Source of the DNA: Blastocladiella emersonii ATCC 22665
Lineage: Eukaryota > Fungi > Blastocladiomycota
NCBI GenBank assembly: GCA_025594325.1
Contig: JANHCV010000016.1
Span: forward strand, 310,001-374,000
DNA length: 64,000 bases
Reading direction: 5' to 3'
The notes below the pieces were generated by a model. That model was not told the DNA's origin. It worked only from the letters and a program-made list of their open reading frames with translations, and made no database searches. Shown here piece by piece: positions 6,601-53,471 of this stretch. The stretch's first letter is position 1, and the number at the start of each line of letters is the position of its first letter. The position numbers were made by a program, and so were the translations under genes.

Positions 6601-8297
6601 CAAGCGCGCGTCGTCGATCCCGGTCCTCGCCGCCACCATCGCCGCGCCCGCTGCGCCTGCGCCTGCGCCTGCACCCGCCGCGCCCCCTGCGCCCGCCCCC
6701 GTCGAGGATGAGTACCGCGAGCCGACGGCCGAGGAGTTTGAGGCCGAGGAGCGGCGGCAGCACTGGAACACGCGGTGGCTCGCGCTGCTCGGGTCGCTGC
6801 TCGACGCGCGCGACGCCAGCGTGCTCGCGTACAAGTACCGCCCCGAGTCGGGCGACCGCCGCGAGGAGTACAAGCTGCTCGACAACGAGACGTGCAGCGT
6901 GCTCCGGCTCGTGGATCTCGACAAGGGCGAGGTACGGACTTTGGGGGAGTGCTGAGTGGTTTGACAAATTGCTGACTCGGGAACCTGTCGTGTTGTAGCC
7001 GTACGTCGCGCACATCTACAAGCCCGAGCTCGCCGACGGCGTACGCAAGTGGGCCGAGCTCGTCGGCGCGTGCAACCGGCCCGCCGAGGCCGACCACGAC
7101 GGTGACGACTCGGCGGCCAACACCACGGTCACCAGTGTCTCCTCGTACGGCGACTCGAGCTTCCACACCCCTACCACTCCCGCGGCGTCCGCGTACGTGA
7201 CGTCGCCCCCGCCGCCGCCGCCGCGCACGCTGCTCTCGTCGCCGACCCGCAGCATCGCGAGTTCCACTAGCAGCACGTCGAGTTTGGGCAGTGGCCGCCC
7301 GCCGTCGCCCACCGTCTCGTCGTCGACGGCCGGCGGCCGCGACATCCCGGCGCTCGCGACGACGCACCTGTTCTCGCTCGCCGACGGCGGCGTCGTCCGC
7401 ATCACGCCCGGGTACCGCGTGTCGGCGGCGCAGCTGCTCGCGCACGCCGAGAAGCACCGCCGCCAGAACAGCTCGGCCATCAGCGAGGCCGTCCTGTGGA
7501 AGACGCTCAAGTGCGTCGCCCGCACGCTGCGCGGGATCCTCGACCACTGCGACCGCGCGCACGAGGCCGAGCAGACGGCGGCGGCCGAGGCCGAGGCCGC
7601 CGCGCTGTTCGCGACCCCGCCGCCGTCCCACGCTAGCGTGTTTGATCTCGAAAGCGGGAGCGGGAGTGACGCCGACACGTCGGTCCTGTCGGCGGCGTCG
7701 ACGCAGCGCACCGTCACGTCCGCCGCCGATACCCGCGTCCGCACGACCGTCGACCCGGCGGACCCGTGGGTGCGCGGCATGCACGTCGACCTTGCCGCCG
7801 AGATCGTGTCGGACGCGAAGCTCAAGGCCGGGTTCGCCGTGATCGCGATCCTGCCCGCCCCCGACACGGACCCGGACGTGCCCGTCGGCCTCAGCGTCGC
7901 GCGGTTCATTGCGCGCCTCGTCGAGCCCCGCGCCCACGACAACTACTGGGAGCCGCAGCTCGAGGGCCTCATCTCGCCCGAACTCGCCGCCGCTCTCACC
8001 GCGCTCGCCCGCGCGACCACGGTCCCGCTCGTCCGCGCCGCCACCGCCAACGTCATGTCTCAGGCCGCCAAGTGGCACGCTCGCACGCGTCGTGAGGCCA
8101 GGGCCGCGGCGACGGGGCGCGCGCCGCCCACGTCGCCTACTGGGATCCCGTCCGCTGCGACGACAACTGCGGGTGCGGGCTCGGGTACCGCGACGCCCGT
8201 CGTTGGGCCGGGCATCGCGCTCCGCCGGATCCCGTCCATGAGCGGGCCCGGTGCGCGGCTTGCGGGGCCGCGGGCGTTCTCCTCCTCGTCGTCGTGA
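3693..8297 (+). CDS. Large Pro/Ser-rich protein (about 1,490 aa) with two predicted TM segments and tandem SxIP motifs; exons 3693..4336, 4402..6931, 6999..8297
   Basis: Introns 4337..4401 and 6932..6998 have canonical signals and join three ORF-track segments in frame. Hydrophobic segments WLVLGALVSIYTL and GWIAFATAAIIFSAIGW. Confidence 0.75.
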
Positions 8298-9193
8298 TCT
8301 TCTGTACCTTCTCTATTCATACCGTTCCGTTCCGTTCGTGGCATCCATCCATTCCATTCCTCCCCAACCCAACCCACCACCTCCTTAATTATCTATCGAC
8401 CTACCCCCCTCCCTCCCAAGCAAACAATATATAACCCTGGGCTGTATCTCAAACGGGGTCGTTGAGAAGGAAGAGATGGCCGTGGCCGTTGTGGACAGCG
8501 GGGCCGCGTGGTCTCCGGCCATCACCACGGCCGGGATGAGGGCTGGAGGGCCTGAAGGGGCACATCTGCTCCAAGTCAAGTTTGGCCAAACGTCAGCATA
8601 AAAGGCCTTCGCGGGAGCCTTCGCCGAGCGCGTCGCGATCTCGACCTTGCCTCGCTCGCACACAAGACATCTTGCCCAGGCCGTTCCTGAGGCCGTTCAC
8701 AGCACTCTGGGTCATCAGCTGGCACCTCGCGCCGCGTCCGGCCATCAACGACTGGCGCGTGGCCGCCGCTCAGTCTCGATGGCCGCGATGATGATCATGG
8801 CCAAGCTGTCACCGCCTTGACACGAACTCTGACGAAGCTCAAGTGATCAGGGCTCTCAGCCAACTCAACGTCTTCTGCTCAAACGCTTCTCAAAGTCCAC
8901 GAAGGCCTTGTTCGTCCAAGTTTGACGAGAAAAATCTCGTCGTTCGCAACGAAAGGACGAGCTTTTCGGGTTCACAAGCAAAATCGCGAGGTGATGAACA
9001 TGGTCCGTTCGCGCGCTTTTGCACGATCGGGAGCGTGGAGCACCGAGGTGAACCGTTCAAGGCGGACTCGGCCGAGGAGCGGACGCAACAGGAGAGAGCG
9101 AGAACGGGAATTTGCTAGTGATCAGAGGAAGTGGGACAGCGTATATTACTACGCTACTGCCAAATGCGCGCAGGCAATGAAGATGCACCCAGA

Positions 9194-48269: not shown

Positions 48270-49220
48270 TTAAGCGAGCATCGCGACCATAGCCGCAACA
48301 ACGACAGCAACGACGCCCGAGCCGGCGTTGAGCCCGTTAGCCGCCGACTTGCCAGCGTTGGCGGGCCCGCTGCCGGTAGTGCCCGAGGCGGTCGAAGCGT
48401 TGGGGGCGATCATCTGGACGGCGAGCGTGAGCTGCTGCTTCTCGGCGGCGGCAACCCAGTCGGCGCCGCACTTGGCGGCGAGGTTGGTGGCGTTGGCGGC
48501 GGGGTTGGGGCGCGACGAGAGCGCGGTGAGGGCGTCCGAGGACCCGAGCGACTTGGTCAGCTTGTACTGCTTGGCCGTGCAGTCGGTGCAGACGAGGTCC
48601 TTGGGCCAGTTGGCCGTCGACGAGGCGCCGGCCGCGGCGGCCGTGGCGTTAGCGCCCGCGCCCATGGCGGCGCCCGTGGTGGCGTTGGCCATGACGGGGG
48701 TGATGGCCTCGGCGGCCTTGGCCTGGTCGACGATGCAGTAGCCCGACGGCGACTTGATGCAGTAGAGGTTGATCTGGTAGAAGGCGCCGACGGCGACCGT
48801 CGAGAACATGGAGTTGGACTGGCACTCGGGCTGGGCCGAGATAGCCTTGAGCGCGTTCTGCGCCTTGGTCGTGCACGCCGACGAGCACAGCTTGGTGACC
48901 TGGGGCTCGAGGTCCTTGGCGGCGACCGCCTTGCCCGTCACGAGCTTGGTGAGCTCGCAGTCCGTGTCGGCGAGCAGCGGCGTCACCACGTCGTCGTACA
49001 GCTTCTTGCACGTCGGCGTCAGCGTCGCGCCGCCGAACAGGTCCGAGATGGCGCCGATGGCCGGCGTGCCCGTCGCGCTCGCGCCGGGCGCGGCAGCGGT
49101 GCCCGTGGCCGTGGCGGCGGGGGCGGCGGGGGCGGCGGCCTGCGGGAGCGCCGTCGACGACTGCGCGGCGAGGACGGCGACGAGGGCCGCGAGGAGGAGC
49201 GAGCGGACGGAGGCCGTCAT
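48270..49220 (-). CDS. Secreted, probably GPI-anchored cysteine-rich cell-surface protein, 316 aa
   Basis: Signal peptide MTASVRSLLLAALVAVLAAQSSTA; Cys-rich core (CSSAC, LYCIK...YCI, VCTDC, AKCG); Ser/Thr spacer; omega-like SAA followed by a hydrophobic C-terminus. Confidence 0.85.
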   Translation of the reverse strand: MTASVRSLLLAALVAVLAAQSSTALPQAAAPAAPAATATGTAAAPGASATGTPAIGAISDLFGGATLTPTCKKLYDDVVTPLLADTDCELTKLVTGKAVAAKDLEPQVTKLCSSACTTKAQNALKAISAQPECQSNSMFSTVAVGAFYQINLYCIKSPSGYCIVDQAKAAEAITPVMANATTGAAMGAGANATAAAAGASSTANWPKDLVCTDCTAKQYKLTKSLGSSDALTALSSRPNPAANATNLAAKCGADWVAAAEKQQLTLAVQMIAPNASTASGTTGSGPANAGKSAANGLNAGSGVVAVVVAAMVAMLA

Positions 49221-49569
49221 GTTGGTGCAGGTCTAGTCTAAAACGCCACTCGTCTATGGGTTGCGGAGATGCGTTTGCTTGGGGGGAGAGAGGACGAAGT
49301 GCGCCAGGTGCTCGCGAGTTTTGAGAAGCGCCCCTCTCCGCGTTCATGCAAGTACGAGGGCGGCGGCAGGCGGCGGTGGCGCCGGCGAGCGAGCCGCAGC
49401 AGCGCCGCACACGTGCGGGTGGCTGCAGGAGTATTCATGGGTGACGGACGATGACGCACAGCCAATCGGCGCGGTCCCTTGCATGCGTGGCGCAACACGA
49501 GAGTGAGGCTTGCGGACATGGCGGCTCGCTCGCTTCCCCTCCCCGCCCCGACGACGCGATGCCCACCCG

Positions 49570-50490
49570 CTAGCCATACGCCTGGGATCGCGTATAGCAT
49601 CCTTGCGGGAAGACGGCCGAGGAGGTGAGCATGTTCACCGCCGCGTTGATGTCGCGGTCGACGCGGATGAGGCAGCGCGGGCACCACCACGGCTTGCAGT
49701 AGCTGGCCGAGAAGTTGAGGTAGCACTTTCCCTCGGACGCAGTAATCAGGTCGCACCACCTCGACGTGAACTCCTCGTTCGCGTAGTACAGGTACACGCC
49801 CTCGTTGCGCAGTTTGGACCCGAACTCCTTGGCCGAGACGCGGTGCTTCGAAGAGGCCTTGTTGTTGAAGTCGTACTGGCCCCCGAGGACGACGATGGAG
49901 CCGTAGCACGCCTTGGCGAGCTGCGAGTGGAGAGCCTGCTTGCGGCTCTTGGTCGTCGCGCGCTGCACGAGGGCAAACGGCTCGTGTGCTTGCCCGACAA
50001 CGCGCACTACGTTCTTGGCGAGGACCCGCGTCTTGTCGGCGGGCCCCTGCAGCGCCGCGGCCGAGAGCTCGTGGTCGCACGCCGTGATCCCGGCGGCCTC
50101 GCGCGCCTCCTTGGCCGCAGCGGCGCGCTTGATGATTAGCGTGATGTCGCCGTACGCCCGCGTCGAGATCGCGGCCACGGCAATGGCGGACGTGGGCTTC
50201 TGCTGACGCACCAGGCACAGCAACCAGCGCTACAGCTCCTTCTCGGCGGACTCGTCGCCCGTGAACTTCGCGCGCTCGCGCTCGTGCTCGATGGCTTCGA
50301 GCACGATCTGCCCCGCCTCCTTGCGGTGAGCCTCGGTGATTTGGAACAGCACGCGCTGCGCGGTCATGGCTCCCTCGCCAACCATTGCGCACTGCTCAAG
50401 TAGCGATCGCGACCGCGACCGTGATGCGGAACCTGTCGCGGCCTCGGCGATGGCCGTCGTGGTGGAGAGCACGTATTTACTCGTGTACAC
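49570..50490 (-). mobile_element. Degenerate Fanzor/TnpB-like RuvC nuclease relic (about 306 codons, in-frame TAG at 50230..50232)
   Basis: C-terminal IVVLG...(36 aa)...YYANEEFTSRWC...WWCPRCLIRVDRDINAAVNML matches the TnpB/Fanzor RuvC-II, zinc-finger and RuvC-III organisation. ORF-track ORFs 50230..50490 and 49570..50223 share one frame. Confidence 0.72.
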
Positions 50491-50532
50491 GAACTAATCA
50501 ATAATTATAATCGGCGGGAATAAAGGGCGAAC

Positions 50533-52030
50533 TTAGTGCTCGCGGAACTTGATCGCGTCGGGGTTGAACCCGGGCATCGGGAACGACTGCGCGAACGCCT
50601 CGACCTCGGCCTTGAGGGCCTTGACGGCGGCGGCCTGGGCGCCGCGCTCGACGGCGGCCGTGAACTCCTTCATCATCTTGGACCCGGCCTCGTCCTGGAT
50701 CGCGAGGGCGATCTGGACGGCGCGGTGGAGGAAGTCGGCGACCTGGACAAAGTCTGCCTCCTTGAACGAGCGCGAGGTCAGGGCCGGGGTACCGACACGC
50801 ACGCCGCCGGGGGACAGCGCCGAGGTATCGCCGTGGACCGCGTTCTTGTTGAGCGTGATGGCGAGCTGGTCGCACACCTTCTCGAGCTTGGACCCCGTGA
50901 GCTTGACGGGGCGCAGGTCCCACAGCACCAGGTGGTTGTCGGTGCCGTCCGTGACCACCTTGTACCCGAGCTCCTTGAGGCGGTCGGCGAGCGCCGTCGC
51001 GTTGCGGCGGACCTGCTGCGCGTACGCCTTCCACTGCGGCGACGCCACCTGCTTGAGCGCGACCGCGACCGCGGCAATCGTGTTGTTGTGCGGGCCGCCC
51101 TGGTTGGACGGGAACACGGCCTGGTTGACGCGGGCCTCGAGGTCCGTGGGCTTGGACCCGTCGACCGACACCTTGCGGAAGAAGATGAGGCCGGCGCGCG
51201 GGCCGCGCAGCGTCTTGTGAGTGGTGGTGGTGACAATGTCCGACAGCTCGAAGGGGTTGTTCTGCTCCTGCGCGGCCACGAGCCCCGAGATGTGGGCAAT
51301 GTCCGACATGAGGAAGGCGCCGTGCTGGTCGGCGATCTTGCGCAGGCGCGCGTAGTCCCAGTCGCGCGCGTACGCCGAGGCGCCGCAGATGACAAGCTTG
51401 GGGCGGAACAGGGCCGCGTTCTGCTCGAGGCGGTCGTAGTCGACGAGTCCCGTGGCCATGTCGACCTGGTACGGCATCGACTCGAAGTAGATGGCTGACG
51501 ACGAGATCTTCTTCTTGGCCGTCTGGTACCCGTGCGTCAGGTGGCCGCCCGAGGGCAGGTCGAGCCCCATGATGCGGTCGTGCGGCGCGAGCATGGCCGT
51601 GAGCGCCGAGAAGTTGGCCGTGGACCCAGAGTACGACTGCACGTTGACGCCCCACTTGGCCGGGTCGAGCCCGAAGGCCGCGAGCGCGCGCTGCTGGCAC
51701 AGCGTCTCGACCTGGTCGACGATGGCGTTGCCGCCGTAGTACCGCGCGCCGGGCAGGCCCTCCGAGTACTTGTTGGTCAGCGCCGACCCGTTGGCCTCCA
51801 TGACGGCCTGCGACGTGAAGTTCTCGGACGCGATGAGCTCCAGCCCAGAGTACTGGCGGTACTTTTCCAGCTCAATCAGCTTGTACATCTCGGGGTCCTC
51901 GACCTCGAGCGACGTGTTCATGCACACGTTCTACACGTGCAAGTCGAGTGAGCGGGGCTGCTCGGCCACGGTCGTCGCGGGCGAGCGAGCGAGCGCAACG
52001 CACCCAGGGATCGACGGGCTTGGGCGACAT
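50533..52030 (-). CDS. SHM2: Serine hydroxymethyltransferase, probably cytosolic, 474 aa; intron 51931..52003
   Basis: [40 protein letters not shown] and the PLP lysine motif [12 protein letters not shown]. Short exon 1 (MSPKPVDPW) has no mitochondrial presequence. Confidence 0.95.
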
Positions 52031-52475: not shown

Positions 52476-53471
52476 CTACATGACGGCGCACTTGTCGGAC
52501 CCGGACGCCGCCGCGGGTCCGCCCGCGCCGCCTGCGCCTGCGCCTGCTGCTGGTGGTGGTGCGGCGTCGGCGGACGACGGGTCGACGGGTGCGCTCGGGA
52601 GCCCGGCGAGCTTGCCCTTGCCCTTGCGCTTGTACGAGTCGAGGAAGTGGATCTGCTTCATGTTGAGGGCGCCGCGCCGCCGCGACCGGATGAACTCGAC
52701 GGCCTCGAGCGCGGGCATGCCGGCCTCGATGAGCGCGATGGCGACGAGGACGGGCGCTCTACACGGGTTTGAGGGATGTGAGTGAATGAGCCCGACCACG
52801 GCACCGAGAGTGCAAAAGACGTACCGTCCGAGCCCCGCGACACAGTGCACCGCGATCGCCCCACCGGCCGCAACCCCCGCGACCGACCCGGCCTTGCCGG
52901 GGACAAACTTGGCAGCGACGATCTGGAGCCAGTGCGCGATAATCGCAGCGGGCGGCGGGTCGCCGTCCTTGAAGTTGAGCTCGTGCAGGCCCAACCCGTG
53001 GGCGGCGAGGGCGGCGGCCGAGTAGGTGGGCTCGCACGCGCGCACCACGTCCGTGACGCCGTGCCGCTGCATCTCGCGCACGTAGTGGGCCAGGTTGGTG
53101 TCGGAAGGCGCATCGTGGACCACGAACCGCAGCGCCTTGTACTCGATCTGCGTCATGGGCTTGAACAGGCCCGTGCCGCGCGTCACGCCGCCGGTTCCAC
53201 TAGGTGCGGCGCCGGGTGTTGGCGTCGACGCGAGGGGCAGCCCGCCAAGCGGCGTGGCGGACCGCGACCGCGAGTCGGTGCTCCCGCCCGACGCGAGGTG
53301 AGGGCGCATGGTGGTGGCCGGCGGCCCGCTCGCCGTCGAGGGGGCGGGCGACGCGGTGCCCGCGCCGCTGTCGCGCAGCGTGCCGCGCGAACCCGTCCGC
53401 GGGATTGCGTCGCCCGTGCCGCGGAGGTTGCCCAGGCTGCCGGCGGGGCGGACGTGGACCTCGTTCGACAT
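52476..53471 (-). CDS. PRL/PTP4A-type prenylated protein tyrosine phosphatase, 309 aa; intron 52759..52824
   Basis: RFVVHDAPSDTNL, VVRACEPTY, FKDGDPPP, HCVAGLGR/APVLVAIALIE, IRSRRRGALNMKQIHFL..Y and C-terminal CAAX (CAVM). Confidence 0.93.
   Translation of the reverse strand: MSNEVHVRPAGSLGNLRGTGDAIPRTGSRGTLRDSGAGTASPAPSTASGPPATTMRPHLASGGSTDSRSRSATPLGGLPLASTPTPGAAPSGTGGVTRGTGLFKPMTQIEYKALRFVVHDAPSDTNLAHYVREMQRHGVTDVVRACEPTYSAAALAAHGLGLHELNFKDGDPPPAAIIAHWLQIVAAKFVPGKAGSVAGVAAGGAIAVHCVAGLGRYVFCTLGAVVGLIHSHPSNPCRAPVLVAIALIEAGMPALEAVEFIRSRRRGALNMKQIHFLDSYKRKGKGKLAGLPSAPVDPSSADAAPPPAAGAGAGGAGGPAAASGSDKCAVM

Follow-up and report, generated by a model that had tools for sequence, protein, structure and literature searches.

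We analyzed a 64-kb stretch of the genome of Blastocladiella emersonii ATCC 22665 (the window; positions are counted from its first letter), in which one minus-strand reading frame, called the relic below, carries the C-terminal signatures of Fanzor and TnpB proteins. An intact Fanzor binds an omegaRNA made from the 3' end of its element and cleaves matching DNA, and its single RuvC site is composed of an Asp (RuvC-I), an alternative Glu and a second Asp (RuvC-III). The relic occupies a 1.3-kb spacer between an SHMT gene and the gene of a glycosylphosphatidylinositol (GPI)-like surface protein. The SHMT gene (Pfam E 1e-181) ends at 50533, with its stop codon at 50535..50533. The other neighbor, which starts at 49220, encodes a protein of 316 residues, rich in Ser and Ala, that has a signal peptide at its start and a hydrophobic tail, and the two genes are thus those between which the initial annotation of this DNA had placed the relic. 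The host of the relic is a eukaryotic genome, its surrounding genes are eukaryotic and contain spliceosomal introns, and no second Fanzor paralog was found within the 64-kb window.

A Fanzor-derived frame with an internal stop

Translation of the minus strand confirmed one frame of 306 codons (50490..49573) with a single in-frame TAG, at codon 87 (50232..50230), as first annotated. The frame is limited upstream by a TAG at 50496..50494 and closed by the TAG at 49572..49570. All strings that had been quoted from it (IVVLG, NEEFTSRWC, CDLI, WCPRC, LIRVDRDINAAVNML and GITACD) were found there. IVVLG does precede NEE, the distance between them being 34 residues and not the 36 given earlier (36 is the number of positions from G143 to E179). 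The C-terminal piece of the frame is identical to part of a public protein of the same strain, the 246-residue 'hypothetical protein H9P43_009979' (P0001). One stop in the frame compares with 7.5–8.8 in shuffled sequences (P≤0.0065), and codon periodicity is strong (G+C content at codon positions 1/2/3, GC1/2/3, of 0.59/0.49/0.88). Because of these two properties and a Pfam match above its cutoff, the frame is not a chance opening in GC-rich DNA.

The Pfam match is to PF07282 (Cas12f1-like TNB / OrfB zinc ribbon). It scores 34.2 bits where the gathering cutoff is 26.3 (E 2.8e-8) and spans residues 139–200 of the 219-residue C-terminal piece. NCBIfam TnpB models gave only weak matches to the relic. 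An exhaustive phmmer search with P0001 against 1.84 billion representative proteins returned as true relatives only four B. emersonii proteins: P0002 (H9P43_004178, 881 residues), P0003 (H9P43_004223, 622), P0004 (580) and P0005 (253), which share 29–38% identity with the query. Word-indexed searches with a P0004 region and with the family profile added only further B. emersonii paralogs (P0007–P0011), and no relative outside B. emersonii was detectable among the 1.84 billion representatives. An apparent match in EukProt, P0006, is a PX-associated protein and was rejected as spurious. No Pfam family other than PF07282 was matched by any paralog, even at E≤10. Against the Protein Data Bank (PDB), the family profile matched LaTranC (9.4e-5), ISDra2 TnpB (0.0065), ApmFz2, a Fanzor2 of a mimivirus (9B0L; 0.037), and also Cas12f, all through the zinc-ribbon/RuvC-III end. 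Every PDB match with E<1 was a TnpB or Cas12-type protein. The language-model (Atlas) neighbors of the C-terminal piece are PF07282 clusters of eukaryotes and giant viruses (score 0.95).

The signatures around the active site agree with these matches. Fanzors have been reported to carry Gly or Pro in place of the canonical RuvC-II Glu and to use an alternative Glu (Jiang et al., 2023), and published layouts of the C-terminus read DPG...E-x6-CxxC...CxxC-x(4-8)-D (Yoon et al., 2023) or D...[TS][TS]-x-x-C4...RD (Bao and Jurka, 2013). In the relic we find IVVLG, E179-x6-C186, TS-RW-C, CPRC-x6-D220 and RD-x-NAA-x-N. No member of the in-genome family departs from Gly143, Glu179 or Asp220, and Asp220, within the RuvC-III string VDRDINAAVN, aligns to D361 of ISDra2 TnpB. 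Judged from profile and signatures, the relic is a member of the TnpB/Fanzor superfamily, and the Gly at RuvC-II, the downstream Glu and the intact RD all stand as initially annotated. The features of the locus are collected in Table 1.

Table 1. Features of the relic locus, in window coordinates
Feature	Position	Strand	Remarks
Fanzor-derived frame, 306 codons including one TAG	49570..50490	-	corresponds to about residues 370-600 of P0003 (622 residues); blastp
Truncation boundary, AT-rich 40-nt spacer from SHMT stop to start of relic frame	50493..50535	-	no Fanzor N-terminal homology upstream
75-nt in-frame 'intron' of public model H9P43_009979 (P0001; ATG 50385)	50230..50304	-	encodes AKFTGD...EL, which matches P0002/P0003
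In-frame TAG nonsense codon	50230..50232	-	paralog column is Gln (P0003 Q447) or Glu (P0002)
RuvC-II beta-strand IVVLG	49882..49896	-	Leu-Gly at canonical Glu position; Gly invariant in family
PF07282 region	49630..49815	-	TS-RW-C, site of 18-nt deletion, CPRC (49683..49672), RD with Asp220 (49653..49651)
Alternative catalytic Glu, E179 of P0001 (first E of NEE)	49774..49776	-	6 residues before first zinc-finger Cys; invariant
10-mer GTTGCGCCAC	49487..49496	-	74 nt after relic stop; also after P0002 and P0003 stops; membership in element uncertain

Missing front, nonsense codon and lost zinc ligand

When all full-length paralogs were compared with the whole window by tblastn, the matches (P0003 residues 392–473 and 483–596, P0002 residues 709–866) all lay in this frame, and paralog regions N-terminal of P0003 residue 392 matched nowhere in the window. 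A blastp alignment with X at the stop joins residues 8–288 of the frame to residues 370–596 of P0003 (E 4e-20); its N-terminal extension beyond the tblastn matches is weak. The relic thus keeps the back 40–50% of a Fanzor gene, with the RuvC-II strand, the alternative Glu, the zinc ribbon and RuvC-III, and is without the N-terminal 55–60%; the frame is cut off directly next to the stop codon of SHMT. Since the RuvC-I Asp of P0003 is residue 212 and the alignments begin at about 370, RuvC-I, WED and REC are missing. The initial annotation was right to call the copy truncated, while its tentative RuvC-I, GITACD, had to be rejected, because the paralogs have a helical linker at the aligned place. 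The RuvC-I motif is G-D212-P-G in P0003 and I-D289-A-G in P0004, about 150 residues N-terminal of anything the relic retains. No hh-x-D-x-G was found in the relic frame, and the window has no match to the GDPG and IDAG regions of the paralogs. The DNA that separates the relic from the SHMT stop contains an AT-rich stretch of 36 nt (50497–50532) and a 10-nt palindrome, CGTGTACACG (50491–50482); this may be the junction left by the truncation or a signal for the 3' end of SHMT.

The TAG falls within homologous coding sequence. Across it, the relic '...EKEL-X-RWLLCLVRQQKP' aligns with '...RKELQRTLLFLVQQRKP' in P0003 and '...VAELERWLRLLALQH' in P0002, and in the longer alignment 'AKFTGDESAEKEL-X-RWLLCLVRQQKP' pairs with 'AKFTGDAAAVAELERWLRLLALQH' (P0002) and 'YPGDEAARKELQRTLLFLVQQRKP' (P0003). 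The piece upstream of the stop, taken alone, gives E values of 0.034 and 0.011, and both alignments stop exactly at the TAG. As the alignment is continuous over the TAG, the segment that the public model removes as an intron is coding-derived, and the TAG replaces a Gln or Glu.

That segment (50304..50230) is bounded by GT..AG, is in frame, and has the TAG as its final three bases. The statement that the frame has no splice signals therefore holds only in part: GT..AG bounds exist and the annotation splices them, but the signals are poor. Nine real introns of this and related loci start with GT[A/G/C]CG and carry a branch site CT[G/A/C]A[C/T] 16–27 nt before YAG, whereas the modeled intron reads GTGCTC...TTCAC-31 nt-TAG and, as coding DNA does, abounds in purines. 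The G at +5, present in 9/9 neighboring introns, is absent from it, and TTCAC departs from the branch consensus. Its length of 75 nt is typical, falling in the modal class (60–79 nt) of B. emersonii introns. The genome annotation was made ab initio (funannotate), and the genome paper mentions no RNA-seq. Elsewhere in the window, the gene of a PRL/dual-specificity phosphatase (L001:6915-7910) is interrupted by an in-frame intron of 66 nt whose signals are canonical (52759–52824, minus strand; GTACGT...CTCAC...TGTAG), so the B. emersonii genome does have genuine introns that are in frame and of this size. From the alignments and the splice-site comparison, the 75-nt 'intron' most likely exists only in the annotation, as a way around the stop.

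The public model could nevertheless be right, the TAG-bearing segment being an intronized former exon that is spliced out and the host keeping a nuclease-dead protein of 246 residues, for example a nucleic-acid-binding or regulatory remnant. The bounds, frame and length of the segment suit such a model, as does a 3' splice site, TGTAG, that resembles real ones. Coding periodicity is kept without frameshifts, two paralogs (P0005 and P0007) are C-terminal-only copies with intact open reading frames (ORFs), and many eukaryotic PF07282 clusters in the Atlas have about 230–270 residues. But the 'intron' is homologous to the paralogs on both sides of the stop, its start and branch site are off consensus, and the model that splices it was made ab initio. 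One zinc ligand of the protein is also gone, and its losses at conserved positions are raised, as described below. We consider this explanation improbable.

Still less probable is that the TAG arose as an artifact of sequencing or of the strain and that the continuous ORF is a live, short Fanzor-like gene, even with just one stop in 306 codons and a GC3 like that of the intact paralogs. Logan contigs from three DNA runs (depths 25.7, 147.5 and 4.8) all read TAG here and show no alternative letters; the runs all come from the sample used for the assembly and are silent on strain variation. The assembly itself (GCA_025594325.1) was built from PacBio HiFi reads and polished with Illumina reads, and the agreement across the three runs excludes an assembly slip. 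A read-through product, moreover, would still have no RuvC-I, WED or REC and would be one zinc ligand short.

That ligand is the second Cys of the first zinc-finger pair, so the C4 zinc finger is incomplete in the relic. Where all complete paralogs have WCAxC, the relic has WC------DL. The first CxxC had been described as decayed to CDLI; the Cys is indeed lost, by an 18-nt in-frame deletion and not by substitution. Conserved positions have been lost more widely as well: the relic departs at 10 of the 29 positions that are identical in four other lineages, compared with 1–5 of 20–24 for each of those lineages in turn. In simulation, a single stop is still consistent with neutral decay of as much as about 0.2 substitutions per site. 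Host-like codon usage had been read as a hint of long residence, and we discard it as a sign of age: the GC3 of the relic (0.88) lies within the range of the intact paralogs (0.83–0.92), and one stop fits at most about 0.2 substitutions per site.

Paralogs, 3' flanks and known systems

The intact relatives that the initial annotation expected elsewhere in this genome do exist, P0003 and P0004 among them. Identity between the relic and its paralogs is 25–39%, and the homology to the paralogs of 580–881 residues covers about 280 residues, well past the zinc ribbon. The other paralogs fall into at least three lineages: A (P0004, P0007, P0008 and P0009; mutual identity 91–94%), which is young and multi-copy, B (P0005, P0010 and P0011; 76–83%) and C (P0002 and P0003; 40%). 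In a tree of the B. emersonii family, which has no outgroup and calls for caution about long branches, the relic falls together with lineage C, P0002 and P0003 (support 100/99), on a terminal branch of 1.42 that is similar to those of its sisters. The Fanzor lineages of the B. emersonii genome thus number at least four and are deeply diverged, some of them single-copy, nuclease-impaired or truncated.

P0002 and P0003 have the same order as the relic (a helix, the VVLG strand, the E-x6-C zinc ribbon and RD), and P0002 shares AKFTGD...EL-R-W-L with it. They differ from the relic in being full length, with a complete C4 zinc finger and a long exon without an internal stop. N-terminal of RuvC-I, in a WED-like region, the TDG-type motifs are ISTDG in P0004, FATDG in P0002 and ITNG in P0003. 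At RuvC-I itself, P0003 has GDPG, P0004 has IDAG and P0002 has L-P-G, with Leu for Asp. This Leu, at about residue 492 of P0002 (locus L004; VVMLPG where P0003 has IIGDPG), stands in a long ORF that is intact, and given the substitution P0002 is probably not an active nuclease. The public model of P0003 (L002:6001-8685) consists of a first exon of 24 residues, an intron of about 700 nt and an ORF of 598 codons (6889-8682). Because the alignment of P0002 with this locus already starts at 6700, without a change of frame, the true N-terminus of P0003 is probably mis-modeled.

At the 3' flank of the relic we found no Rfam match, and the flank folds worse than its shuffles (z +2.2). There are no convincing terminal repeats around the relic and no close copy that would define its ends. 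A 13-nt inverted repeat (49385/49521) is near chance expectation: the window has three loci of this kind, and 1.3 are expected. No serine recombinase (IS607 TnpA) neighbors the relic or any paralog at the loci examined. The 10-mer GTTGCGCCAC behind the relic stop is its sole copy in the window, where 0.36 are expected. A 69-nt block is common to the 3' flanks of P0002 and P0003 (L002:8750-8983 and L004:8868-8928). A model of this block found no match in the relic flank, so the two paralogs differ from the relic in this respect too. Inside the block lies a dispersed intergenic motif, CG[C/T]GTTGCGCCAC (core GACGCGTTGCGCCACAC), which is duplicated, 166 nt apart, behind P0003 and has further sites at L003:4591-4608 (minus strand), L004:6071-6111, L007:7933-7961, L002:11188-11200 and window 49487-49499 (minus strand). 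The 17-mer core of the block likewise recurs at unrelated intergenic sites. The dispersed motif may act in regulation or mark the end of an element.

Two other paralogs are sharp 5'-truncated duplicates. P0005 is 93% identical in DNA to P0010 (L003:5974-6881 vs. L007:6042-6944) and P0007 96% identical to P0004 (L006:5038-6605 vs. L005:5656-7223). Both keep the 3' end and 119–264 nt of 3' flank, the same 3'-anchored pattern as in the relic, and such recurrent 5'-truncated copies hint at how the element is copied. Among Fanzor1 proteins carried by Helitron2 elements of Chlamydomonas (CRe-1/2/3), copies are 'frequently 5'-truncated' with intact 3' ends (Bao and Jurka, 2013), a likeness to the relic, P0005 and P0007 in pattern only.

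Among known systems, Fanzor1 is one of the closest. What sets Fanzor1 apart from Fanzor2 is a TDG motif in the WED domain, an enlarged REC and a location outside IS607 elements. Like the relic, Fanzor1 proteins such as SpuFz1 of Spizellomyces punctatus (8GKH) are fungal TnpB homologs with Gly at RuvC-II, an alternative Glu six residues ahead of the zinc finger and [TS][TS]-x-x-C...RD. The full-length B. emersonii paralogs, of 580–881 residues, resemble them in size, in a TDG motif and in having no IS607 TnpA nearby. The B. emersonii family differs from published Fanzors in its spacing, with 22–29 residues between the Cys pairs (12–18 in published Fanzors) and 190–330 residues from RuvC-I to the alternative Glu (120–160). 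The C-terminal CxxC and RD-x-NAA-x-N of ISDra2 TnpB (8BF8/8EXA/8H1J) and ApmFz2 (9B0L) align directly with the relic. These proteins have about 400–520 residues and occur in IS200/605 or IS607 contexts; beyond their last 30–70 residues, similarity to the relic is undetectable in sequence, and ISDra2 TnpB, unlike the relic, has the canonical RuvC-II Glu. An undescribed Fanzor family had been suggested. We find a lineage-specific and very divergent clade, but of a known kind, as three Fanzor1 families were described from Allomyces macrogynus, of the same phylum as B. emersonii, in 2013 (Bao and Jurka, 2013).

A decayed copy and its meaning for the family

We conclude, with a probability of roughly 0.86, that the relic is a pseudogene, the 3' portion of a Fanzor1-like gene. 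Its ancestor would have been a mobile RNA-guided nuclease, and the fragment that is left is presumably untranslated. A 5' truncation removed WED, REC and the RuvC-I Asp; it may have happened at insertion, by one-ended, 3'-anchored copying as in Helitron-borne Fanzor1, or through a later deletion. An 18-nt deletion took one zinc ligand, and a change of CAG or GAG to TAG produced the nonsense codon. Because of these losses the relic cannot bind a guide RNA or cleave DNA.

Several observations weigh against this conclusion. Neither an omegaRNA nor a target-site duplication, a transposase or transposon ends were demonstrated at the relic locus, and neither single sequences nor family profiles matched the solved Fanzor1 structure 8GKH. 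AlphaFold2 models, with a confidence (pLDDT) of 39.4 for the relic protein with the family alignment and 35.9 for P0004, are too poor to confirm the RuvC fold, and only the predicted order of helix, strand, helix and strand fits it. In spite of deep divergence, about 290 aligned codons contain no frameshift and only one stop; together with a branch like those of its sisters, this argues for coding constraint until fairly recently. There is also the small chance that the 75-nt segment is spliced and a 246-residue product expressed.

The idea that PF07282 is a generic zinc-ribbon match in an unrelated ORF or a spurious GC-rich frame can draw on the many long spurious ORFs of this DNA (other long ORFs on the minus strand are spurious, including one of 384 residues in another frame), on a Pfam match of only about 60 residues and on the unconfirmed fold, but it is hardly credible against the homology over about 280 residues to paralogs in which the RuvC-I D-x-G, the alternative Glu and RD follow one another as expected, the exclusively TnpB and Cas12-type PDB matches and the strong codon periodicity.

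If the relic is a pseudogene, the public protein H9P43_009979 is an artifactual model of it, and the relic adds an ordinary, dead copy to a kind of mobile gene that is already known. It is a long shot that the relic, spliced as in the public model, and other C-terminal-only Fanzor derivatives (P0005 and P0007), which would have arisen independently, act for example as regulators or competitors of active paralogs, or that they record 3'-anchored, one-ended copying of a Blastocladiella-specific clade. The intact B. emersonii paralogs, and not the relic, are the candidates for compact eukaryotic RNA-guided nucleases.

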